Source of the DNA: Ranitomeya imitator
Taxonomy: Eukaryota
DNA: 64,000 nucleotides
Direction: 5' to 3'
NCBI RefSeq assembly: GCF_032444005.1
Contig: NC_091291.1
Coordinates: 4,216,001 to 4,280,000 of the forward strand
The translations under genes were made by a program, and so were the position numbers. This document shows positions 42,415-58,709 of this stretch, in pieces (position 1 is the first letter of the stretch; each line of letters opens with the position of its first letter). The notes beneath the pieces are model-generated. The model ran no database searches. It had not been told where the DNA came from and worked only from the letters and a program-made list of their open reading frames with translations.

Positions 42415-43878
42415 TGTCACGATATGGTATGAAATATCATGAGTAGTTCTCTTGCTAGCCTGCATGGGCTAAGCCCCCTTCGTGGAGTAACAGTTTGTAG
42501 CTGCAAATTCCTGGCTTTCCTTCTCTGAGAGTATGGGGGAAGAGAGGTTTTATTGCCGCATGGAATTTACAACTGGCATTTCCTGTGTAAGCTCTTGTTC
42601 AGCTATAAGGGAAGTAGAAACTTCAAGAATCCATGAAAGATTCTTTGTTTAGTTTTTGTTAGATGTTAGGCAAACGATTTAAGCTAGGAACATGAAAATA
42701 TATATTCGTAGTCTCACTCGGTGTATCTACACATCCCATGAAACTCGGGCTTCTAACTCCATCTGGTAAAGAAGTAGGGTTTTATCTGGAAAAATGTATC
42801 CCAGATAGGACATATTTGATCTCATTAGAATGCTCACGTTAATCCGAGATGAATTATGAGTATGTTAGGACTCTGACATGTTTTGTAGTGAAGTTATAGA
42901 AATCTGAGGAAATAGTTTAAAGTTTACTCAGAATGTAGAGAGAGGAGGGTCTGGATAAGCCAGCCCTTCTGTGATGTCAAAGCCTTAAGGTATTAAGTTT
43001 GTGGCAGGAGCCCCAGCTGACTCTCTTCTGCTGATTTCTCCTTCTGGACTGCTTGTCTTCTGAAGCCAGCAGCACGTCCAAATGAGCTGGGACATATGGA
43101 AAAACTCCACTAGCCTGGATGCCTGTCATGCTTTAAACATGTGAGTGTTGCTTTTCTCATTTATTCCCTTTATGTTATAATTACCCATGTACATATTTGC
43201 AATTGTCTCATTTGTAACTTCTTTATAAAATATTTTTGATAAAGCACTGCCTAATTAATTTTTTATGGGATATAATATTATATATTAGTCCGTTCTCCTG
43301 CTCTAACCTTACCCTGTCTTCTGAAGGGAAATACGCTACTGTTACTGTTGTGTTGGGTTAGCTTCGGACCTGTTTAATCGAAGCTGGTGGCAGCGAGAAG
43401 TGTGCAGACTTTTGGGTTATGTTGTAGCGGCTGCGGCGTTAATAATTATTGTTCCTGCCTGAGTGGGAGTAGTTATCGCGTCGCTGCAGCGTGCCCAATA
43501 GCCAGTACATAGCAGGCAGCCTTTCTGGCGACTAATTACCCAGGGTGCAGTACCTAATCTGACCTGAGAGTAAGGGGGCGCCAGAGAGCTGCAAGTGTTA
43601 AGTGGAACTGTAAGCGGGATATACATAAATCCCTGCAGTTTGTGGTATATTGAAAGCAGTGGGATACCTAGAATAAGCCCCTGCTGTAAACTAAGAGGTC
43701 AATAGCCTTGTGTGTGGTTTTTCATCACATCGTGGAGTGGAGGGATAACTAAGATAAGCCCCCCTGCACATGTGATAGCCGTCTGTTGGCCTAAAGTCAC
43801 CTCAATCCGTGACGTAGGGGTGACTGTCACGGTGTGACTCCTGACCCATTGGTGGCAGCGGTCAGGGGAATCGTGACA
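42415..43878. mobile_element. Solo LTR (1464 bp)
   Basis: TGTCACGA...TCGTGACA termini with a perfect 5-bp TSD GTGAC (42410-42414 / 43879-43883). Confidence 0.8.
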
Positions 43879-43941
43879 GTGACTAGCACACTCCAGGGTG
43901 TTGTGATGCAAAAAAGTGGGGATTTATTACATACAGTAAAT

Positions 43942-43980
43942 CACAAACGTTTCGGTCGATACTGGACCTTCATCAGTGTG
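43942..43980 (-). ncRNA. Minimal type I hammerhead ribozyme (mirror copy)
   Basis: Exact reverse complement of 44302-44340. Confidence 0.75.
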
Positions 43981-44301
43981 CTAGGTATAATTGTATACTT
44001 GTATGGCCCCAAAACAATAGAATACTCGGATTTGCATCAACTGACGGTGAGTCAGAATAATAGGTGGCGCTGAGGCTTAAGAGCTGTCAGTACGCCGGGA
44101 CACTAGGGATAAATGCGGTATCCACCGCTAATAGAGAGTGTCACACTATTAGCGGTGGATACCGCATTTATCCCTAGTGTCCCGGCGTACTGACAGCTCT
44201 TTTAAGCCTCAGCGCCACCTATTATTCTGACTCACCGTCAGTTGATGCAAATCCGAGTATTCTATTGTTTTGGGGCCATACAAGTATACAATTATACCTA
44301 G

Positions 44302-44340
44302 CACACTGATGAAGGTCCAGTATCGACCGAAACGTTTGTG
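44302..44340 (+). ncRNA. Minimal type I hammerhead ribozyme (Penelope type)
   Basis: CACA-CUGAUGA-A-GGUC-CAGUAUC-GACC-GAAA-CGUU-UGUG: stem I CACA/UGUG, stem II GGUC/GACC, loopless palindromic stem III, GUU cleavage triplet. Confidence 0.75.
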
Positions 44341-44822
44341 ATTTACTGTATGTAATAAATCCCCACTTTTTTGCATCACAACACCCTGGAGTGTGCTAGT
44401 CACTTTATATTGTATATGTTCAGGTTTGGGCACCTATGACTGTGCACCTCCCCTATTTAGGCTGTGCTTAGCATCTTCTATATCACAGTATCTTCCCATT
44501 GTGAGTCGGACCCTCTGGGTAGGTGCGGGCTGTGATGGAGACGGTGAGGGGTTTTGTGCAGGAGCAGAGTCACCTGAATTCCGGCCGTTCTCCCGTGACA
44601 ACCCCTCCACCCTGACAACCTCACAGGTTGTGTTTACCAGCCACACACACGCTAATAAGCTTTGGATTAGCGCCGCTGCCTTTCTCCGGCTTCCTACCTG
44701 GTAACCAGGGCGCAGAACAAAAGCCCTTTACATTGATTGATTGTGTGCGGGGCGGAGACGGCGGCCACCAAGGAAAGTGACCCGAGAGGACAGAAGCCAC
44801 CGAGCAGCAGTGAGGACGGCTG

Positions 44823-47274: not shown

Positions 47275-47893
47275 CTGCACATGGTGGGCCGATGTCTCCT
47301 GCGCCCCATTCCTTTCTTATACCCACTGCACATGGTGGGCCGACGTCTCCAGCGCTCCATTCCTTTCTTATACGCACAGCACATGGTGGGCCGATGTCTC
47401 CTGCGCCCCATTTCTTTCTTATACGCACAGCACATGGTGGGCCGATGTCTCCTGCGCCCCATTTCTTTCTTATACCCACTGCACATGGTGGGCCGACGTC
47501 TCCAGCGCTCCATTCCTTTCTTATACGCACAGCACATGGTGGGCCGACGTCTCCCGTGCCCCATTCCTTTCTTATACGCACAGCACATGGTGGGCCGACG
47601 TCTCCAGCGCTCCATTCCTTTCTTATACGCACAGCACATGGTGGGCCGACGTCTCCCGCGCTCCATTCCTTTCTTATACACACAGCACATGGTGGGCCGA
47701 CATCTCCCACGCCCCATTCCTTTCTTTTATGCACAGCACATGGTGGGCCGACGTCTCCCGCGCCCCATTCCTTTCTTATACACACAGCACATGGTGGGCC
47801 GACGTCTCCTGCGCCCCATTCCTTTCTTATACCCACAGCACATGGTGGGCCGACGTCTCCTGCGCCCCATTCCTTTCTTATACACACAGCACA
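47275..47893. repeat. 51-bp minisatellite, left part (CACATGGTGGGCCGACGTCTCCCGCGCCCCATTCCTTTCTTATACGCACAG)
   Basis: About 12 copies; same array resumes at 57179 after the CR1 insertion. Confidence 0.96.
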
Positions 47894-47898
47894 GCACA

Positions 47899-50800
47899 GC
47901 TTCGAAAGCATCACCAAACCAGGGATTCAAGCTTCAGGAGGCTAATTTGCATATTCCAGGTGCCTTCTGGGAGAAGCGAAGTCTCCCTAAGCTAGAAGAT
48001 CGTTGGGTACAGCCGGGACCAGCTGCTTCGAAAGCATCACCAAACCAGGGATTCAAGCTTCAGGAGGCTAATTTGCATATTCCAGGTGCCTTCTGGGAGA
48101 AGCGAAGTCTCCCTAAGCTAGAAGATCGTTGGGTACAGCCGGGACCAGCTGCTTCGAAAGCATCACCAAACCAGGGATTCAAGCTTCAGGAGGCTAATTT
48201 GCATATTCCAGGTGCCTTCTGGGAGAAGCGAAGTCTCCCTAAGCTAGAAGATCGTTGGGTACAGCCGGGACCAGCTGCTTCGAAAGCATCACCAAACCAG
48301 GGATTCAAGCTTCAGGAGGCTAATTTGCATATTCCAGGTGCCTTCTGGGAGAAGCGAAGTCTCCCTAAGCTAGAAGATCGTTGGGTACAGCCGGGACCAG
48401 CTGCTTCGAAAGCATCACCAAACCAGGGATTCAAGCTTCAGGAGGCTAATTTGCATATTCCAGGTGCCTTCTGGGAGAAGCGAAGTCTCCCTAAGCTAGA
48501 AGATCGTTGGGTACAGCCGGGACCAGCTGCTTCGAAAGCATCACCAAACCAGGGATTCAAGCTTCAGGAGGCTAATTTGCATATTCCAGGTGCCTTCTGG
48601 GAGAAGCGAAGTCTCCCTAAGCTAGAAGATCGTTGGGTACAGCCGGGACCAGCTGCTTCGAAAGCATCACCAAACCAGGGATTCAAGCTTCAGGAGGCTA
48701 ATTTGCATATTCCAGGTGCCTTCTGGGAGAAGCGAAGTCTCCCTAAGCTAGAAGATCGTTGGGTACAGCCGGGACCAGCTGCTTCGAAAGCATCACCAAA
48801 CCAGGGATTCAAGCTTCAGGAGGCTAATTTGCATATTCCAGGTGCCTTCTGGGAGAAGCGAAGTCTCCCTAAGCTAGAAGATCGTTGGGTACAGCCGGGA
48901 CCAGCTGCTTCGAAAGCATCACCAAACCAGGGATTCAAGCTTCAGGAGGCTAATTTGCATATTCCAGGTGCCTTCTGGGAGAAGCGAAGTCTCCCTAAGC
49001 TAGAAGATCGTTGGGTACAGCCGGGACCAGCTGCTTCGAAAGCATCACCAAACCAGGGATTCAAGCTTCAGGAGGCTAATTTGCATATTCCAGGTGCCTT
49101 CTGGGAGAAGCGAAGTCTCCCTAAGCTAGAAGATCGTTGGGTACAGCCGGGACCAGCTGCTTCGAAAGCATCACCAAACCAGGGATTCAAGCTTCAGGAG
49201 GCTAATTTGCATATTCCAGGTGCCTTCTGGGAGAAGCGAAGTCTCCCTAAGCTAGAAGATCGTTGGGTACAGCCGGGACCAGCTGCTTCGAAAGCATCAC
49301 CAAACCAGGGATTCAAGCTTCAGGAGGCTAATTTGCATATTCCAGGTGCCTTCTGGGAGAAGCGAAGTCTCCCTAAGCTAGAAGATCGTTGGGTACAGCC
49401 GGGACCAGCTGCTTCGAAAGCATCACCAAACCAGGGATTCAAGCTTCAGGAGGCTAATTTGCATATTCCAGGTGCCTTCTGGGAGAAGCGAAGTCTCCCT
49501 AAGCTAGAAGATCGTTGGGTACAGCCGGGACCAGCTGCTTCGAAAGCATCACCAAACCAGGGATTCAAGCTTCAGGAGGCTAATTTGCATATTCCAGGTG
49601 CCTTCTGGGAGAAGCGAAGTCTCCCTAAGCTAGAAGATCGTTGGGTACAGCCGGGACCAGCTGCTTCGAAAGCATCACCAAACCAGGGATTCAAGCTTCA
49701 GGAGGCTAATTTGCATATTCCAGGTGCCTTCTGGGAGAAGCGAAGTCTCCCTAAGCTAGAAGATCGTTGGGTACAGCCGGGACCAGCTGCTTCGAAAGCA
49801 TCACCAAACCAGGGATTCAAGCTTCAGGAGGCTAATTTGCATATTCCAGGTGCCTTCTGGGAGAAGCGAAGTCTCCCTAAGCTAGAAGATCGTTGGGTAC
49901 AGCCGGGACCAGCTGCTTCGAAAGCATCACCAAACCAGGGATTCAAGCTTCAGGAGGCTAATTTGCATATTCCAGGTGCCTTCTGGGAGAAGCGAAGTCT
50001 CCCTAAGCTAGAAGATCGTTGGGTACAGCCGGGACCAGCTGCTTCGAAAGCATCACCAAACCAGGGATTCAAGCTTCAGGAGGCTAATTTGCATATTCCA
50101 GGTGCCTTCTGGGAGAAGCGAAGTCTCCCTAAGCTAGAAGATCGTTGGGTACAGCCGGGACCAGCTGCTTCGAAAGCATCACCAAACCAGGGATTCAAGC
50201 TTCAGGAGGCTAATTTGCATATTCCAGGTGCCTTCTGGGAGAAGCGAAGTCTCCCTAAGCTAGAAGATCGTTGGGTACAGCCGGGACCAGCTGCTTCGAA
50301 AGCATCACCAAACCAGGGATTCAAGCTTCAGGAGGCTAATTTGCATATTCCAGGTGCCTTCTGGGAGAAGCGAAGTCTCCCTAAGCTAGAAGATCGTTGG
50401 GTACAGCCGGGACCAGCTGCTTCGAAAGCATCACCAAACCAGGGATTCAAGCTTCAGGAGGCTAATTTGCATATTCCAGGTGCCTTCTGGGAGAAGCGAA
50501 GTCTCCCTAAGCTAGAAGATCGTTGGGTACAGCCGGGACCAGCTGCTTCGAAAGCATCACCAAACCAGGGATTCAAGCTTCAGGAGGCTAATTTGCATAT
50601 TCCAGGTGCCTTCTGGGAGAAGCGAAGTCTCCCTAAGCTAGAAGATCGTTGGGTACAGCCGGGACCAGCTGCTTCGAAAGCATCACCAAACCAGGGATTC
50701 AAGCTTCAGGAGGCTAATTTGCATATTCCAGGTGCCTTCTGGGAGAAGCGAAGTCTCCCTAAGCTAGAAGATCGTTGGGTACAGCCGGGACCAGCTGCTT

Positions 50801-53086
50801 CGAAAGCATCACCAAACCAGGGATTCAAGCTTCAGGAGGCTAATTTGCATATTCCAGGTGCCTTCTGGGAGAAGCGAAGTCTCCCTAAGCTAGAAGATCG
50901 TTGGGTACAGCCGGGACCAGCTGCTTCGAAAGCATCACCAAACCAGGGATTCAAGCTTCAGGAGGCTAATTTGCATATTCCAGGTGCCTTCTGGGAGAAG
51001 CGAAGTCTCCCTAAGCTAGAAGATCGTTGGGTACAGCCGGGACCAGCTGCTTCGAAAGCATCACCAAACCAGGGATTCAAGCTTCAGGAGGCTAATTTGC
51101 ATATTCCAGGTGCCTTCTGGGAGAAGCGAAGTCTCCCTAAGCTAGAAGATCGTTGGGTACAGCCGGGACCAGCTGCTTCGAAAGCATCACCAAACCAGGG
51201 ATTCAAGCTTCAGGAGGCTAATTTGCATATTCCAGGTGCCTTCTGGGAGAAGCGAAGTCTCCCTAAGCTAGAAGATCGTTGGGTACAGCCGGGACCAGCT
51301 GCTTCGAAAGCATCACCAAACCAGGGATTCAAGCTTCAGGAGGCTAATTTGCATATTCCAGGTGCCTTCTGGGAGAAGCGAAGTCTCCCTAAGCTAGAAG
51401 ATCGTTGGGTACAGCCGGGACCAGCTGCTTCGAAAGCATCACCAAACCAGGGATTCAAGCTTCAGGAGGCTAATTTGCATATTCCAGGTGCCTTCTGGGA
51501 GAAGCGAAGTCTCCCTAAGCTAGAAGATCGTTGGGTACAGCCGGGACCAGCTGCTTCGAAAGCATCACCAAACCAGGGATTCAAGCTTCAGGAGGCTAAT
51601 TTGCATATTCCAGGTGCCTTCTGGGAGAAGCGAAGTCTCCCTAAGCTAGAAGATCGTTGGGTACAGCCGGGACCAGCTGCTTCGAAAGCATCACCAAACC
51701 AGGGATTCAAGCTTCAGGAGGCTAATTTGCATATTCCAGGTGCCTTCTGGGAGAAGCGAAGTCTCCCTAAGCTAGAAGATCGTTGGGTACAGCCGGGACC
51801 AGCTGCTTCGAAAGCATCACCAAACCAGGGATTCAAGCTTCAGGAGGCTAATTTGCATATTCCAGGTGCCTTCTGGGAGAAGCGAAGTCTCCCTAAGCTA
51901 GAAGATCGTTGGGTACAGCCGGGACCAGCTGCTTCGAAAGCATCACCAAACCAGGGATTCAAGCTTCAGGAGGCTAATTTGCATATTCCAGGTGCCTTCT
52001 GGGAGAAGCGAAGTCTCCCTAAGCTAGAAGATCGTTGGGTACAGCCGGGACCAGCTGCTTCGAAAGCATCACCAAACCAGGGATTCAAGCTTCAGGAGGC
52101 TAATTTGCATATTCCAGGTGCCTTCTGGGAGAAGCGAAGTCTCCCTAAGCTAGAAGATCGTTGGGTACAGCCGGGACCAGCTGCTTCGAAAGCATCACCA
52201 AACCAGGGATTCAAGCTTCAGGAGGCTAATTTGCATATTCCAGGTGCCTTCTGGGAGAAGCGAAGTCTCCCTAAGCTAGAAGATCGTTGGGTACAGCCGG
52301 GACCAGCTGCTTCGAAAGCATCACCAAACCAGGGATTCAAGCTTCAGGAGGCTAATTTGCATATTCCAGGTGCCTTCTGGGAGAAGCGAAGTCTCCCTAA
52401 GCTAGAAGATCGTTGGGTACAGCCGGGACCAGCTGCTTCGAAAGCATCACCAAACCAGGGATTCAAGCTTCAGGAGGCTAATTTGCATATTCCAGGTGCC
52501 TTCTGGGAGAAGCGAAGTCTCCCTAAGCTAGAAGATCGTTGGGTACAGCCGGGACCAGCTGCTTCGAAAGCATCACCAAACCAGGGATTCAAGCTTCAGG
52601 AGGCTAATTTGCATATTCCAGGTGCCTTCTGGGAGAAGCGAAGTCTCCCTAAGCTAGAAGATCGTTGGGTACAGCCGGGACCAGCTGCTTCGAAAGCATC
52701 ACCAAACCAGGGATTCAAGCTTCAGGAGGCTAATTTGCATATTCCAGGTGCCTTCTGGGAGAAGCGAAGTCTCCCTAAGCTAGAAGATCGTTGGGTACAG
52801 CCGGGACCAGCTGCTTCGAAAGCATCACCAAACCAGGGATTCAAGCTTCAGGAGGCTAATTTGCATATTCCAGGTGCCTTCTGGGAGAAGCGAAGTCTCC
52901 CTAAGCTAGAAGATCGTTGGGTACAGCCGGGACCAGCTGCTTCGAAAGCATCACCAAACCAGGGATTCAAGCTTCAGGAGGCTAATTTGCATATTCCAGG
53001 TGCCTTCTGGGAGAAGCGAAGTCTCCCTAAGCTAGAAGATCGTTGGGTACAGCCGGGACCAGCTGCTTCGAAAGCATCACCAAACC
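47899..53086 (+). repeat. 41 apparently identical 126-bp monomers plus a 22-bp partial copy
   Basis: GCTTCGAAAG starts at 47899 and 53065; 5166/126 = 41; all 42-aa translations in the ORF track are identical. Confidence 0.97.
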
Positions 53087-53201
53087 GCGCGCCTTACGGC
53101 GCGCGAATTTTTGCCTGTAGGACATTATTGCAAGAGAGCTTGGCTGAGTAGATTACACAAGAAGGAAAACACACAGCAAGTCAGCAGGATCTAGGAGCAA
53201 C

Positions 53202-54155
53202 ATGGCAGATGTGACAACCTACATGGTGAGCTGCAGCATGTGCTACATGTTCACAGATCGACCAGAAGAAGAATCCAATTTCACCTGTCAGAAGTGTAGA
53301 CTAGTGGCCCTTTTAGAAGAAAAGGTGCGGGGTCTGGAAGAAAGAATAGCAACTTTGAAACTCATCAAAGAGAATGAAGACTTTCTAGACAGAACAGAAG
53401 CATCTCTACTGGTCACAGAAGGTGCAAAAAGTGTCAGAGAACCTCCAAAAGCAGATGAGTGGAAGCATGTGACCAAAAGAAGCAAGAAGACCATGGAGAA
53501 ATCACCAACCACACAACTGAAGAACCGATATCAAATCTTTGTAGAGGATGAAGATGGCACACCTAAGAATGAAGCAATACCAGCAAGCAAAAAAGAAAAG
53601 GGCACACAGCAACAAGTGACAGCAAAAAGTACAGCCAAGAAGCAACGAAGAGTGGTGGTGGTGGGAGACTCACTACTGAGAGGCACCGAAGCAGCCATCT
53701 GCAGACCGGACATAACTGCAAGAGAAGTATGCTGCCTTCCAGGTGCGATGATCAAGGATGTGACCGATAGGATACCAAAGCTCTTCAGCTCCAAGGACGT
53801 CCACCCATTTCTTCTGATACATGTTGGCACCAATGACACGGCAAGGAAGGACCTACCGACAATCTGCAAGGACTTTGAAGAGTTGGGGAAGAAAGTAAAG
53901 GAACTGGATGCACAGGTAGTTTTTTCTTCTATCCTTCCAGTAGACGGGCATGGCACCAGGAGATGGAACAGGATCCTTGATGCAAACAACTGGCTAAGAC
54001 GATGGTGCAGACAACAAGGATTTGGATTCCTGGACCACGGTGTGAATTACTGGTATGATGGACTCCTCGCCAGAGACGGACTACACCTCAACAAACCTGG
54101 GAAACACACATTCGCCAGAAGACTCGCTACACTCATCAGGAGGGCGTTAAACTAG
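53202..54155 (+). CDS. CR1 ORF1p: zinc finger/leucine zipper plus SGNH esterase
   Basis: CxxC...CxxC, heptad LLEEKVRGLEERIATL, esterase blocks VVGDSLLRG, HVGTND and DGLHLN; Kozak AACATGG. Confidence 0.93.
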   Translation: MADVTTYMVSCSMCYMFTDRPEEESNFTCQKCRLVALLEEKVRGLEERIATLKLIKENEDFLDRTEASLLVTEGAKSVREPPKADEWKHVTKRSKKTMEKSPTTQLKNRYQIFVEDEDGTPKNEAIPASKKEKGTQQQVTAKSTAKKQRRVVVVGDSLLRGTEAAICRPDITAREVCCLPGAMIKDVTDRIPKLFSSKDVHPFLLIHVGTNDTARKDLPTICKDFEELGKKVKELDAQVVFSSILPVDGHGTRRWNRILDANNWLRRWCRQQGFGFLDHGVNYWYDGLLARDGLHLNKPGKHTFARRLATLIRRALN

Positions 54156-54292: not shown

Positions 54293-57073
54293 ATGCTCGC
54301 AAACGCCAGAAGCCTGACAAACAAGATGGAAGAACTAGAAGCAGAAATATCTACAGGTAACTTTGACATAGTGGGAATAACCGAGACATGGTTAGATGAA
54401 AGCTATGACTGGGCAGTTAACTTACAGGGTTACAGTCTGTTTAGAAAGGATCGTAAAAATAGGAGAGGAGGAGGGGTTTGTCTCTATGTAAAGTCTTGTC
54501 TAAAGTCCACTTTAAGGGAGGATATTAGCGAAGGGAATGAGGATGTCGAGTCCATATGGGTTGAAATTCATGGAGGGAAAAATGGTAACAAAATTCTCAT
54601 TGGGGTCTGTTACAAACCCCCAAATATAACAGAAAGCATGGAAAGTCTACTTCTAAAGCAGATAGATGAAGCTGCAACCCATAATGAGGTCCTGGTTATG
54701 GGGGACTTTAACTACCCGGATATTAACTGGGAAACAGAAACCTGTGAAACCCATAAAGGCAACAGGTTTCTGCTAATAACCAAGAAAAATTATCTTTCAC
54801 AATTGGTGCAGAATCCAACCAGAGGAGCAGCACTTTTAGACCTAATACTATCTAATAGACCTGACAGAATAACAAATCTGCAGGTGGTTGGGCATTTAGG
54901 AAATAGCGACCACAATATTGTGCAGTTTCACCTGTCTTTCACTAGGGGGACTTGTCAGGGAGTCACAAAAACATTGAACTTTAGGAAGGCAAAGTTTGAA
55001 CAGCTTAGAGATGCCCTTAATCTGGTAGACTGGGACAATATCCTCAGAAATGAGAATACAGATAATAAATGGGAAATGTTTAAGAACATCCTAAATAGGC
55101 AGTGTAAGCGGTTTATACCTTGTGGGAATAAAAGGACTAGAAATAGGAAAAACCCAATGTGGCTAAACAAAGAAGTAAGACAGGCAATTAACAGTAAAAA
55201 GAAAGCATTTGCACTACTAAAGCAGGATGGCACCATTGAAGCTCTAAAAAACTATAGGGAGAAAAATACTTTATCTAAAAAACTAATTAAAGCTGCCAAA
55301 AAGGAAACAGAGAAGCACATTGCTAAGGAGAGTAAAACTAATCCCAAACTGTTCTTCAACTATATCAATAGTAAAAGAATAAAAACTGAAAATGTAGGCC
55401 CCTTAAAAAATAGTGAGGAAAGAATGGTTGTAGATGACGAGGAAAAAGCTAACATATTAAACACCTTCTTCTCCACGGTATTCACGGTGGAAAATGAAAT
55501 GCTAGGTGAAATCCCAAGAAACAATGAAAACCCTATATTAAGGGTCACCAATCTAACCCAAGAAGAGGTGCGAAACCGGCTAAATAAGATTAAAATAGAT
55601 AAATCTCCGGGTCCGGATGGCATACACCCACGAGTACTAAGAGAACTAAGTAATGTAATAGATAAACCATTATTTCTTATTTTTAGTGACTCTATAGCGA
55701 CAGGGTCTGTTCCGCAGGACTGGCGCATAGCAAATGTGGTGCCAATATTCAAAAAGGGCTCTAAAAGTGAACCTGGAAATTATAGGCCAGTAAGTCTAAC
55801 CTCTATTGTTGGTAAAATATTTGAAGGGTTTCTGAGGGATGTTATTCTGGATTATCTCAATGAGAATAACTGTTTAACTCCATATCAGCATGGGTTTATG
55901 AGAAATCGCTCCTGTCAAACCAATCTAATCAGTTTTTATGAAGAGGTAAGCTATAGACTGGACCACGGTGAGTCATTGGACGTGGTATATCTCGATTTTT
56001 CCAAAGCGTTTGATACCGTGCCGCACAAGAGGTTGGTACACAAAATGAGAATGCTTGGTCTGGGGGAAAATGTGTGTAAATGGGTTAGTAACTGGCTTAG
56101 TGATAGAAAGCAGAGGGTGGTTATAAATGGTATAGTCTCTAACTGGGTCGCTGTGACCAGTGGGGTACCGCAGGGGTCAGTATTGGGACCTGTTCTCTTC
56201 AACATATTCATTAATGATCTGGTAGAAGGTTTACACAGTAAAATATCGATATTTGCAGATGATACAAAACTATGTAAAGCAGTTAATACAAGAGAAGATA
56301 GTATTCTGCTACAGATGGATCTGGATAAGTTGGAAACTTGGGCTGAAAGGTGGCAGATGAGGTTTAACAATGATAAATGTAAGGTTATACACATGGGAAG
56401 AGGGAATCAATATCACCATTACACACTGAACGGGAAACCACTGGGTAAATCTGACAGGGAGAAGGACTTGGGGATCCTAGTTAATGATAAACTTACCTGG
56501 AGCAGCCAGTGCCAGGCAGCAGCTGCCAAGGCAAACAGGATCATGGGGTGCATTAAAAGAGGTCTGGATACACATGATGAGAGCATTATACTGCCTCTGT
56601 ACAAATCCCTAGTTAGACCGCACATGGAGTACTGTGTCCAGTTTTGGGCACCGGTGCTCAGGAAGGATATAATGGAACTAGAGAGAGTACAAAGGAGGGC
56701 AACAAAATTAATAAAGGGGATGGGAGAACTACAATACCCAGATAGATTAGCGAAATTAGGATTATTTAGTCTAGAAAAAAGACGACTGAGGGGCGATCTA
56801 ATAACCATGTATAAGTATATAAGGGGACAATACAAATATCTCGCTGAGGATCTGTTTATACCAAGGAAGGTGACGGGCACAAGGGGGCATTCTTTGCGTC
56901 TGGAGGAGAGAAGGTTTTTCCACCAACATAGAAGAGGATTCTTTACTGTTAGGGCAGTGAGAATCTGGAATTGCTTGCCTGAGGAGGTGGTGATGGCGAA
57001 CTCAGTCGAGGGGTTCAAGAGAGGCCTGGATGTCTTCCTGGAGCAGAACAATATTGTATCATACAATTATTAG
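54293..57073 (+). CDS. CR1 ORF2p: APE endonuclease plus reverse transcriptase, uninterrupted
   Basis: ANARSL, GITETW, GDFNYPDINW, SDHN (APE); [39 protein letters not shown] (RT). Confidence 0.97.
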   Translation: MLANARSLTNKMEELEAEISTGNFDIVGITETWLDESYDWAVNLQGYSLFRKDRKNRRGGGVCLYVKSCLKSTLREDISEGNEDVESIWVEIHGGKNGNKILIGVCYKPPNITESMESLLLKQIDEAATHNEVLVMGDFNYPDINWETETCETHKGNRFLLITKKNYLSQLVQNPTRGAALLDLILSNRPDRITNLQVVGHLGNSDHNIVQFHLSFTRGTCQGVTKTLNFRKAKFEQLRDALNLVDWDNILRNENTDNKWEMFKNILNRQCKRFIPCGNKRTRNRKNPMWLNKEVRQAINSKKKAFALLKQDGTIEALKNYREKNTLSKKLIKAAKKETEKHIAKESKTNPKLFFNYINSKRIKTENVGPLKNSEERMVVDDEEKANILNTFFSTVFTVENEMLGEIPRNNENPILRVTNLTQEEVRNRLNKIKIDKSPGPDGIHPRVLRELSNVIDKPLFLIFSDSIATGSVPQDWRIANVVPIFKKGSKSEPGNYRPVSLTSIVGKIFEGFLRDVILDYLNENNCLTPYQHGFMRNRSCQTNLISFYEEVSYRLDHGESLDVVYLDFSKAFDTVPHKRLVHKMRMLGLGENVCKWVSNWLSDRKQRVVINGIVSNWVAVTSGVPQGSVLGPVLFNIFINDLVEGLHSKISIFADDTKLCKAVNTREDSILLQMDLDKLETWAERWQMRFNNDKCKVIHMGRGNQYHHYTLNGKPLGKSDREKDLGILVNDKLTWSSQCQAAAAKANRIMGCIKRGLDTHDESIILPLYKSLVRPHMEYCVQFWAPVLRKDIMELERVQRRATKLIKGMGELQYPDRLAKLGLFSLEKRRLRGDLITMYKYIRGQYKYLAEDLFIPRKVTGTRGHSLRLEERRFFHQHRRGFFTVRAVRIWNCLPEEVVMANSVEGFKRGLDVFLEQNNIVSYNY

Positions 57074-57178
57074 GTTCTGTAGAAGGACGTAGATCTGGGT
57101 ATTTATTATGATGGAATATAGGCTGAACTGGATGGACAAATGTCTTTTTTCGGCCTTACTAACTATGTTACTATGTTA

Positions 57179-58709
57179 CACATGGTGGGCCGACGTCTCC
57201 CGCGCTCCATTCCTTTCTTATACACACAGCACATGGTGGGCCGACATCTCCCACGCCCCATTCCTTTCTTATATACACAGCACATGGTGGGCCGATGTCT
57301 TCAGCGCTCCATTCCTTTCTTATACCCACTGCACATGGTGGGCCGATGTCTTCAGCGCTCCATTCCTTTCTTATACCCACTGCACATGGTGGGCCGACGT
57401 CTCCAGCGCCCCATTCCTTTCTTTTATGCACAGCACATGGTGGGCCGACGTCTCCCGCGCCCCATTCCTTTCTTATACCCACTGCACATGGTGGGCCGAT
57501 GTCTCCAGCGCTCCATTCCTTTCTTATACCCACAGCACATGGTGGGCCGACGTCTCCCGCGCCCCATTCTTTTCTTTTATGCACAGCACATGGTGGGCCG
57601 ACGTCTCCCGCGCCCCATTCCTTTCTTATACCTACTGCACATGGTGGGCCGACATCTCCCACGCCCCATTCCTTTCTTATATACACAGCACATGGTGGGC
57701 CGATGTCTCCAGCGCTCCATTCCTTTCTTATACCCACTGCACATGGTGGGCCGACGTCTCCCGCGCCCCATTCCTTTCTTATACCTACTGCACATGGTGG
57801 GCCGACATCTCCCACGCCCCATTCCTTTCTTATATACACAGCACATGGTGGGCCGATGTCTCCAGCGCTCCATTCCTTTCTTATACCCACTGCACATGGT
57901 GGGCCGACGTCTCCAGCGCCCCATTCCTTTCTTTTATGCACAGCACATGGTGGGCCGACGTCTCCCGCGCCCCATTCCTTTCTTATACACACAGCACATG
58001 GTGGGCCGACGTCTCCCGCGCCCCATTCCTTTCTTATACCCACTGCACATGGTGGGCCGATGTCTCCCGCGCCCCATTCCTTTCTTTTATGCACAGCACA
58101 TGGTGGGCCGACGTCTCCCGCGCCCTATTCCTTTCTTATACGCACAGCACATGGTGGGCCGACGTCTTCCGCGCCCCATTCCTTTCTTATACGCACAGCA
58201 CATGGTGGGCCGACGTCTTCCGTGCCCCATTCCTTTCTTATATGCACAGCACATGGTGGGCCGACGTCTCCCACGCCCCATTCCTTTCTTATACCCACTG
58301 CACATGGTGGGCCGACATCTCCCGCGCCCCATTCCTTTCTTATACGCACAGCACATGGTGGGCCGACGTCTTCCGCGCCCCATTCCTTTCTTATACGCAC
58401 AGCACATGGTGGGCCGACGTCTTCCGCGCCCCATTCCTTTCTTATACCCACTGCACATGGTGGGCCGACGTCTCCCGCGCCCCATTCCTTTCTTATACGC
58501 ACAGCACATGATGGGCCGACATCTCCCGCGCCCCATTCCTTTCTTATACCCACTGCACATGGTGGGCCGACATCTCCCGCGCCCCATTCCTTTCTTATAC
58601 GCACAGCACATGGTGGTCCGACGTCTCCAGCGCCCCATTCCTTTCTTATACACACAGCACATGGTGGGCCGACGTCTTCCGCGCCCCATTCCTTTCTTAT
58701 ACACAGCAC
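57179..58709. repeat. 51-bp minisatellite, right part
   Basis: About 30 copies of the same unit as 47275-47893. Confidence 0.96.

Follow-up and report, generated by a model that had tools for sequence, protein, structure and literature searches.

Monomeric 5′ ends are a textbook peculiarity of rodent L1, and how such monomer arrays arise, how they help the element and how they are refilled against 5′ truncation are open questions. The same questions are raised by a locus of the poison frog Ranitomeya imitator. In the window analysed here, a stretch of 64,000 nucleotides of contig NC_091291.1 (positions 4,216,001 to 4,280,000), a CR1-type LINE is preceded by 5.2 kb of tandem repeats, which a preliminary description had taken for either an L1-style monomer promoter or a satellite carried along by the LINE. 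The question is whether this array belongs to the element and what it would do there. The reading favoured here, which we hold to be reasonably probable, is that the array is a heritable 5′ module of a young CR1-type LINE family of R. imitator or a very close relative, and that its units are snRNA-type Pol II promoter cassettes.

Anatomy of the array and of its insertion site

The array lies on the plus strand at 47899–53086 and consists of 41 identical 126-bp units and a 42nd cut off after 22 nt. Tandem Repeats Finder returned a period of 126, 41.2 copies and 100% matches, and a direct count gave 41 units with 0 mismatches plus the 22-nt partial unit ending at 53086, which bears out the number and the identity of the monomers in the preliminary description. 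That description had extended the array from 47899 to 53201; its start was retained, but the remainder beyond 53086 is a unique leader, or 'tether', of 115 nt (53087–53201, plus strand), placed between the array and the ORF1 ATG at 53202. As had been proposed, the unit array joins the CR1 leader directly at 53087, with no host DNA between them. A hairpin with an 8-bp all-G/C stem and a 4-nt UUAC loop occupies 53086–53105, followed by a T5 run at 53108. A 28-nt core of the unit, containing the octamer described below, occurs 41 times in the window, always within the array.

Each 126-bp unit has 52% G+C and contains 4 CpG, a count that agrees with the earlier one; the CpG observed/expected ratio of the array is nevertheless 0.48, and the array lacks CpG-island status. 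On the plus strand, no ATG occurs in the 5,303 nt preceding the ORF1 start (P ~0.015 over 241 unique nt), while the opposite strand of the array presents 2 ATG per unit. One frame of the array is open because 126 equals 42 × 3, and an open frame is expected in ~57% of random units; the array as a coding repeat was rejected, as it contains no ATG and is out of frame with ORF1. That the unit derives from the leader or body of the element itself, or from an RNA gene, was rejected as well: no similarity of the unit to the leader or the LINE body was detected, the local alignment scores being at shuffle level, and no Rfam match to the unit was obtained, even at E ≤ 1.

The window is densely filled with expanded minisatellites. 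One of these, with a 51-bp unit, is interrupted by the array and the LINE, as determined with the repeat finder and a register check. Its left part (47277–47892) comprises 12 units, the last one complete. Its right part (57179–58709) restarts at CAC|ATGG, CAC being the final three bases of the minisatellite unit. Because the minisatellite resumes in the same register at 57179, array and LINE form one block, of 9,280 bp and with no host DNA within, and the insertion of the CR1 beside a pre-existing 126-bp satellite was rejected, given that one minisatellite in register flanks both. Reading of the 5′ junction revealed six extra bases, AGCACA (47893–47898, plus strand), which repeat the preceding minisatellite bases; the minisatellite unit at this junction measures 57 bp and all others measure 51 bp, or 100/102 where the search anchor is mutated. 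Filler or microhomology at the junction could account for these bases, as could an imperfect target-site duplication or the 5′ transduction of a short stretch. The single 9.3-kb insertion suggested earlier is thus upheld insofar as one in-phase minisatellite was interrupted once, but it is indistinguishable from the arrival of fewer units followed by local expansion.

The CR1-type LINE and its units at other loci

The first reading frame of the LINE, ORF1 (53202–54155, plus strand), is open and encodes 317 aa, the C-terminal part being an esterase domain of the SGNH/GDSL type (Pfam Lipase_GDSL_2). It matched the ORF1 esterase of PDB 4c1b at E 3e-23; because we take 4c1b to come from an L2-clade element, an esterase ORF1 alone cannot separate CR1 from L2. 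The intact ORF2 (54293–57073, plus strand) encodes 926 aa with an apurinic-type endonuclease (APE) and a reverse transcriptase (RT), recognized by Pfam as Exo_endo_phos (5e-16, N-terminal) and RVT_1 (4e-34). Full-length matches to ORF2 stood at 57% for Xenopus tropicalis and 46% for ducks and turtles, and ORF1 found full-length matches among many bird and turtle proteins; to our knowledge, birds have essentially only CR1 among ORF-bearing LINEs. The 3′ UTR (57074–57178, plus strand) ends without poly(A) in two copies of an 8-nt repeat plus one base, ACTATGTT ACTATGTT A (57162–57178), after which the flank begins. Judged by its APE and RT-bearing ORF2, nearest to vertebrate CR1, by its esterase ORF1 and by its tail of 8-nt repeats, the element is a CR1-type LINE. 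The L1 clade was rejected, since ORF1 is of the esterase type and ORF2, which groups with CR1, matched L1 ORF2p weakly (E 1e-12), less than R2.

This CR1 is also represented elsewhere in the genome. ORF1 was identical at 315 of 317 positions to XP_069601356.1, a RefSeq model on another chromosome, and ORF2 at 429 of 431 positions to a RefSeq model likewise on another chromosome; no record identical to the exact ORF1 was found. Such near-identical ORFs, together with many 5′-truncated copies, mark the CR1 family as young, multi-copy and active-looking.

Six gene models of R. imitator, each on a contig of its own other than that of the window, contain the translated unit; these contigs belong to an assembly other than the chromosome-level one, and the comparison was made at the protein level. 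In CAJ0938790.1, five identical units lead into 23 residues that match without exception the translated window positions 53123–53191, within the leader. The six units in CAJ0955383.1 represent a diverged subfamily in partial decay; they differ among themselves and stop after ...ASPN, corresponding to unit nt 21–22, the same unit position at which the window array ends. The translations that tell the two unit subfamilies apart are ASK...QEANL and AWK...EEANL. Moreover, in two gene models that enter the array from unrelated sequence, the array residues begin at unit nt 20–22, in the same phase as the array/leader junction; array starts read from gene models could be gene-prediction artefacts. 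Because two unit subfamilies share the leader junction, the unit appears to have co-evolved with the element, and on the evidence of these gene models it is probably a component of the element family and not a local oddity. The outcome that the preliminary description had named as contrary to its proposal, a stand-alone satellite with other CR1 copies lacking the unit, is not what was observed: units run into the same leader in CAJ0938790.1, and the diverged subfamily ends at the common position. Its second suggestion, a satellite carried along by the LINE, is not supported as a one-off event, given two subfamilies with one leader junction, but an ancestral capture could have taken place.

The protein hits to the unit came from one species only and included no large free-standing 126-bp satellite, a kind of sequence that gene models sample poorly. 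Searches of metagenome contigs and prokaryotic genome contigs for exact occurrences of the unit core gave no matches. These units also concern the annotation of poison frog genomes, in which they enter gene models, as the six R. imitator proteins containing them illustrate.

Promoter-like motifs and the proposed mechanism

Three motifs of vertebrate snRNA promoters were matched in the unit, the Staf and PSE consensus sequences being taken from PMC5493778. In the last full unit, a perfect octamer, ATTTGCAT, lies at 52985–52992 on the plus strand (unit nt 47–54; P ~0.002 per shuffled unit) and recurs every 126 bp back to 47945. Only 3 nt after it, an inverted Staf/SPH-like site occupies 52996–53014 on the minus strand (unit nt 58–76), preserving 15 of 18 specified positions (P 0.033), and a PSE-like site, TCTCCCTAAGCTAGAAGA, is found at 53022–53039 on the plus strand (unit nt 84–101), with 10 of 12 specified positions (P 0.05). 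Taken singly, the matches to Staf and to PSE are weak (P 0.03 and 0.05), and they were tested after an snRNA-type promoter had been proposed. None of 20,000 dinucleotide shuffles equalled the joint match of octamer, Staf 15/18 and PSE 10/12. With 53087, the first base of the leader, as reference, the PSE-like site lies at −65/−48, and the octamer and Staf-like site of the previous unit lie at −228/−221 and −217/−199, respectively; in chicken 7SK, the PSE is placed at −67/−46, the octamer at −222/−215 and Staf at −210/−192 (PMC2235858). The motif spacing would correspond to that of canonical snRNA promoters, in which the PSE is centred near −55, provided that transcription starts at the unit boundary or first leader base.

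Other promoter types were considered for the unit. An L1-like CpG-island/YY1 promoter was rejected, as the CpG observed/expected ratio is low and the best YY1 match in the unit has 3 mismatches in 9 positions. The earlier proposal of an L1-style monomer promoter is consequently borne out in layout, with tandem units, a cut-off last unit, a linker and ORF1, but not in kind, as CpG island and YY1 are absent and the motifs are snRNA-like. Transcription by Pol III of the U6 type is unlikely, considering that the unit contains no TATA box and that the leader carries the T5 run. A 3′ box, the downstream signal for 3′-end formation in snRNA genes, was sought near the 3′ end of the LINE and none was found at ≤1 mismatch, the only two such matches both lying inside ORF2. 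Pol II promoters of the snRNA type normally yield short RNAs, and a product of 4–9 kb would therefore be unusual.

The following scheme is inferred, including any activity of the units as promoters, the polymerase involved, where transcription starts and how the units are kept identical. Each 126-bp unit would be a compact, TATA-less vertebrate snRNA-type Pol II promoter, with the octamer and the Staf/SPH-like site as enhancer and the PSE-like site as core. Together with the enhancer of the preceding unit, it would direct a start at approximately the first base of the next unit, and the last unit would direct it at the first leader base. Because the sequence is snRNA-like (octamer/Staf/PSE), the units would be upstream, not internal, promoters, and since promoters of this type lie upstream of the start, retrotransposition would leave a lone copy behind. 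The RNA of an arrayed element would carry every unit downstream of the start, and daughter copies would therefore keep promoters, by a logic also seen in mouse L1 monomers and in HeT-A. The long ATG-free 5′ region would allow ribosomes to get to ORF1. Each cycle would cost units, through the start unit chosen and through 5′ truncation, and array expansion would have to make up for the loss. Because the 5′ end of the present copy is unit nt 1, which lies 22 nt upstream of the predicted start, this copy must be a 5′-truncated cDNA of a longer RNA or derive from another start site.

The array may also owe part of its length to its surroundings. The LINE might have arrived with few units that grew to 41 on site by unequal sister-chromatid exchange or replication slippage, a course that we consider unlikely but worth keeping in view: 0 differences among 41 units are expected of very recent amplification, the region is almost wholly minisatellite within a window full of such expansions, and the flanks would look alike. 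An RNA-borne array from a homogeneous source, however, accounts equally well for the identity. Units that expanded locally may still be promoters, the difference being the origin of the 5.2 kb. Quite unlikely, in our estimate, is a rebuilding by the CR1 enzyme itself, which, once at the 5′ end of the RNA or while still in the repeats, would re-align on a downstream unit and copy it repeatedly, so that each insertion would turn a short template into a uniform array of its own, of any length. The letter-perfect units and the single phase of the array/leader junction and of two array starts are consistent with such a process, and CR1-type enzymes build 3′ microsatellite tails by slippage, which offers a parallel; yet internal re-priming from the RNA 5′ end is no established reaction. 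The unit-to-unit differences of the older subfamily represent ordinary decay and are neutral on this point. A bolder combination, which we regard as rather doubtful, is that a vertebrate LINE took over the snRNA promoter system, with its octamer/Staf enhancer and SNAPc-type core and with tandem units firing the next, and that RT rebuilds identical arrays at the RNA 5′ end; if true, monomeric LINE promoters would have been invented a second time, independently, and the mechanism of their renewal would be visible.

The remaining explanations deny the array a function or its very size. A host 126-bp repeat could have been gained by 5′ transduction or recombination and have no promoter role, transcription proceeding from the leader or flanking DNA; the unit is indeed dissimilar to leader and LINE body, and a precedent is provided by Tribolium CR1-3_TCa, the 5′ UTR of which includes 1.2 units of the TCAST satellite (PMC3411249). 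This passenger origin is made very unlikely by the leader junction common to two unit subfamilies, by the motifs and their spacing and by a lack of ATG confined to the sense strand, which point to selection on function, and by the protein hits, confined to one species and showing no large free-standing satellite, as far as gene models, which sample such sequences poorly, can tell. Long perfect repeats are classically prone to erroneous collapse or expansion, and assembly or polishing could have produced the number of units or their complete identity; but 5.2 kb fits within one long read, both junctions are clean with flanks in register, and a second assembly holds at least five and at least six consecutive units elsewhere, those of the young subfamily being identical at the protein level, so that we deem an artefact extremely improbable. 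The heritable module of snRNA-type promoter units is accordingly the reading carried into the comparisons below.

Comparison with known systems

No CR1 with a 5′ monomer array was found in open-access full texts, in line with the preliminary description, to which 5′ monomers were not known as a CR1 feature. In Tribolium castaneum, CR1-3_TCa carries the TCAST satellite in its 5′ UTR, where the authors propose a Pol II promoter (PMC3411249). It is likewise a CR1-clade element with satellite-type units in the 5′ UTR, but it has only 1.2 of them, and the 360-bp satellite concerned is a major centromeric one and for the most part free-standing; a long array is absent, and nothing indicates that subfamilies there share a conserved unit/leader junction. 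The snRNA transcription apparatus has been linked to CR1-type retrotransposition or to LINE promoters through SINEU, a group of SINEs whose heads derive from snRNA and whose tails derive from CR1 (PMC4494074), and through the SNAP50-bound Pr77 promoter of trypanosomatid LINEs (PMC8190864). SINEU differ in carrying snRNA coding sequence and not the upstream promoter, and Pr77 in being a single 77-nt internal element of protists.

Vertebrate snRNA promoters (U1/U2/U4, Pol II; U6/7SK, Pol III) combine a DSE, made up of octamer and SPH/Staf, with a PSE; the frog unit likewise has the octamer, in perfect form, with candidate Staf and PSE sites, the former beside the octamer, and it lacks a TATA box. 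The two differ in that the frog cassette, compressed to 126 bp and repeated 41 times, would drive a protein-coding LINE RNA of 4–9 kb, in that no 3′ box was found near the 3′ end of the frog element and in that its Staf and PSE matches are imperfect. If true, this would be the first indication of a vertebrate LINE using an snRNA-type promoter, which would suit an element whose RNA is without a poly(A) tail. In Drosophila HeT-A, described by Danilevskaya et al. in 1997 as 'promoting in tandem', an upstream copy reportedly supplies the promoter for the downstream copy. In both cases a promoter outside the transcript would still be inherited through an upstream copy, but HeT-A involves whole elements in tandem at telomeres, the promoter being part of the preceding element's 3′ end, and the frog array involves small units within one element.

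The frog array, as a putative promoter on a CR1, resembles above all in its layout the repeated promoter units of mouse L1. In mouse and rat L1 (A, Tf and Gf monomers plus tether), tandem 5′ units, the 3′-most one cut off, are likewise followed by a short unique linker before ORF1; the units bear promoters and their number varies between copies (PMC5381506, PMC9022269), with 3–4 units on average in young mouse L1 (PMC9022269). Mouse units measure ~200 bp against 126 bp in the frog CR1, and arrays hold 3–4 against 41 units. Moreover, the frog array belongs to the CR1 clade, has neither CpG island nor YY1 site, and combines snRNA-type motifs with letter-perfect units, the motifs implying an upstream promoter in contrast to the internal promoter of mouse L1. 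If this reading is true, a second, unrelated LINE clade would have reached the same layout with a different promoter chemistry and ten-fold longer uniform arrays, as a convergent solution. It would also provide a cleaner system, with identical units, a fixed junction and predicted starts at unit boundaries, in which the dose dependence and the renewal of monomeric promoters would be testable.

Organization and insertion of the CR1 element

The array of 41 identical 126-bp monomers claimed in the preliminary description was borne out by two approaches. Tandem Repeats Finder delimited it at 47899-53086, with 41.2 copies, 100% matches and no indels, and direct unit-by-unit comparison revealed 41 units with no difference from the first one, plus a partial 42nd, of which the initial 22 nt are present. 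The counts of CpG (4 per unit, as previously described) and of G+C (52% in the array) were also obtained. The array, ending at 53086, was indeed joined without host DNA to the CR1 leader, a unique stretch of 115 nt (53087-53201) placed between the array and ORF1 (53202-54155; open, 317 aa), which encodes a GDSL/SGNH esterase domain. ORF2 (54293-57073; open, 926 aa) carries endonuclease and reverse transcriptase domains, and the 3′ UTR of 105 nt terminates in ACTATGTT ACTATGTT A, without poly(A). A very stable hairpin (53086-53105) coincides with the junction of array and leader; it has an 8-bp stem made of G/C pairs only and a 4-nt loop (CGCGCGCC-UUAC-GGCGCGCG) and is followed by GAATTTTTG, and the start of the leader also includes a T5 run. 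The hairpin might serve to mark the 5′ ends of the shortest transcripts, or to stabilise them.

Protein searches revealed that ORF1 shares 91-99% identity with R. imitator proteins, including 315/317 residues with the RefSeq model XP_069601356.1, also of 317 aa, and has relatives spanning its full length in turtles, lizards, crocodilians and many birds. ORF2 was identical to XP_069607092.1 in 429 of 431 residues; over its full length, its identity was 57% with elements of Xenopus tropicalis and 46% with those of ducks and turtles. These relatives, together with the match of the ORF1 esterase domain to the solved LINE ORF1 esterase 4c1b and the 8-nt repeat tail, place the element by sequence in the CR1 clade. 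Many R. imitator gene models include 5′-truncated pieces of this CR1, as expected for an abundant and recently active LINE. The tail repeat ACTATGTT (57162-57178) also matches the tail within LINE109, a LINE primer published for Dendrobates tinctorius (bioRxiv 10.1101/2023.11.06.565769), and therefore related CR1 families with that tail exist across dendrobatids.

The whole block interrupts a minisatellite with a 51-bp period. The left part of this repeat comprises 12 units, each exactly 51 bp long, the last of which closes at 47892, and on the right the minisatellite restarts at 57179 with CAC|ATGG, the final 3 bases of one unit and the start of the next. Since the minisatellite keeps its register over 9,280 bp and the array adjoins the LINE without host DNA in between, the landing of a CR1 beside an older 126-bp satellite was ruled out. 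The proposal of one insertion into the minisatellite is thus supported as a single in-register interruption, and the junctions are compatible with the 41 units arriving together or otherwise. The target-site duplication was short and ambiguous, either CAC(A) or an imperfect AGCAC. Six extra bases, AGCACA (47893-47898), lie between the last left unit and the array and repeat the adjoining minisatellite bases, whereas on the right (57178-57181) only CAC is retained; they could be 5′-joining filler, an imperfect target duplication, or bases brought from a source copy at the same minisatellite site.

The window (1-64000) consists almost entirely of long minisatellite arrays, many of 1-5 kb, whose periods lie between 20 and 156 bp (among them 42, 68/136, 40, 28, 86, 26/52, 56/156, 23/46, 30, 34, 41, 42, 35, 51, 25, 44), the CR1 lying inside one of them, and represents a subtelomere-like or otherwise expansion-prone region. 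It also harbors a perfect palindrome of 527 bp (43878-44404), with 206-nt arms, nested 56-nt arms, 100% complementarity and an 11-nt centre. Searched against Rfam, this palindrome gave no hammerhead match even at E <= 1; the matches obtained were all to miRNA hairpin models and below threshold, as any long hairpin can yield.

That the 5,166 bp of repeats contain no difference implies a very recent homogenisation of the array. Such uniformity may have been inherited via RNA, the source array being just as uniform, may have arisen by local expansion after insertion, in keeping with the minisatellite composition of the window, or may reflect a reverse transcriptase that copied the unit again and again at the 5′ end of the RNA; a single locus does not discriminate among these three routes. 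An assembly artefact is unlikely, considering that both junctions are clean, that 5.2 kb fits within a single long read and that runs of identical units were found in a second assembly.

Recurrence of the unit and of its junction with the leader

Evidence from other loci was obtained at the protein level, by translating 8 units in the one open frame of the unit and searching them against a protein collection; an exact scan of metagenome and prokaryotic genome contigs with the unit core gave no match. The resulting 42-residue repeat was found in six R. imitator gene models on six different contigs (CAJ0955383.1, CAJ0938790.1, CAJ0956549.1, CAJ0923654.1, CAJ0966992.1 and CAJ0938632.1). Two further models of the CAJ series derive from assembly GCA_958301615.1, distinct from the chromosome-level assembly.

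After five identical repeats, CAJ0938790.1 continues with 23 residues identical to translated 53123-53191, within the CR1 leader. CAJ0955383.1 carried six repeats of a diverged subfamily, some with single changes, with AWK...EEANL in place of ASK...QEANL, which end after ...ASPN, at unit nt 21-22, where the window array passes into the leader. The array-to-leader join thus recurs at another locus, with a junction predating the split of the two unit subfamilies, and the unit itself appears to be an inherited component of the element lineage. The same two observations contradict a local satellite or a one-off transduction, and the other reading of the preliminary description, a satellite carried along by the LINE, is not supported as a one-off event. 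The public gene models are the evidence for the recurrent join and its conservation between subfamilies, and the window locus provides the 41 units and the cleanly bounded insertion.

Unrelated residues come before the array-derived part of both models, whose first residue, Q, is encoded by unit nt 22-24; unless the gene models mislead, their arrays would start at unit nt 20-22. In the six public gene models, the translated CR1 units are joined to domains of PI3K-like, GPCR, bHLH and other types. Entry into the unit occurs at one and the same point, K|SLPKLEDRW, in two models unrelated to each other, which points to a splice acceptor within the unit or, otherwise, to artefacts of annotation.

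A candidate snRNA-type promoter

Motif consensus sequences were taken from PMC5493778 and P values from dinucleotide shuffles. Each unit contains a perfect octamer (nt 47-54; P 0.002), and a 28-mer including it occurred 41 times in the window, only in the array and never on the opposite strand. An inverted Staf/SPH-like site (nt 58-76; 15/18 specified positions, P 0.033) and a PSE-like site (nt 84-101; 10/12, P 0.05) were modest matches, scored once these sites had already been proposed, and none of 20,000 shuffles equalled the unit on all three sites jointly. No TATA box was found in the unit. More telling than the matches is their spacing: counted from the first leader base (53087), the last PSE-like site lies at -65 to -48, and the octamer and Staf-like site of the preceding unit at -228 to -221 and -217 to -199. 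If 53087 is the start, these positions are close to those of the chicken 7SK promoter, with PSE at -67/-46, octamer at -222/-215 and Staf site at -210/-192 (PMC2235858).

Moreover, no sense-strand ATG occurs in the 5,303 nt that begin with the array and end at the start codon of ORF1 (P ~0.015 for the 241 unique bases), against two per unit on the opposite strand, which fits a transcribed and scanned 5′ UTR. A promoter role of the units is thus plausible, and the promoter type is likely to be unlike that of L1. The proposed L1-style 5′ end was supported in structure but not in sequence, since the array, at a CpG observed/expected ratio of 0.48, does not qualify as a CpG island and contains no YY1 site. 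Further weak points of the snRNA-type reading are the absence of a 3′ box near the LINE 3′ end and the short RNAs that such promoters usually yield.

Rephased from nt 23 to nt 22, the unit would constitute a promoter cassette covering positions -126 to -1, with an integer number of such cassettes making up the array directly before the leader, in which case the '22-nt truncated last monomer' would be no truncation. An snRNA-type promoter lies 5′ of its own start, and a single one would go missing on retrotransposition. With tandem cassettes, each would initiate transcription at the head of the next, so that the RNA would carry every downstream cassette. A weak point is that the window copy begins at unit nt 1, with the predicted start 22 nt further downstream; this copy would then be a 5′-truncated version of a longer RNA, or another start would have been used. 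The HeT-A element is known for 'promoting in tandem', and the proposed relay would resemble that scheme. Its outcome, promoters being passed on, would be that of mouse L1 monomers, reached by a different route.

Comparison with known 5′ arrays

No CR1 with a 5′ monomer array was found in full-text searches of open-access papers. The nearest CR1 case found there was Tribolium CR1-3_TCa, whose 5′ UTR has 1.2 TCAST satellite units (PMC3411249), against 41 units here. Tandem 5′ units of L1 are many in mouse and two or three in rat, hyrax, horse, elephant and opossum; none were observed in lizard L1, and frog and fish L1 have short 5′ UTRs, with no tandem duplication mentioned for them (PMC5381506). 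The average in young mouse L1 subfamilies is 3-4 monomers (PMC9022269). Other connections of LINEs with the snRNA apparatus are found in SINEU, with snRNA-derived heads and CR1 tails (PMC4494074), and in the SNAP50-bound Pr77 promoter of trypanosomatids (PMC8190864). The monomeric LINE 5′ end was already known from L1, and what is new here is its clade, CR1, and its set of motifs.
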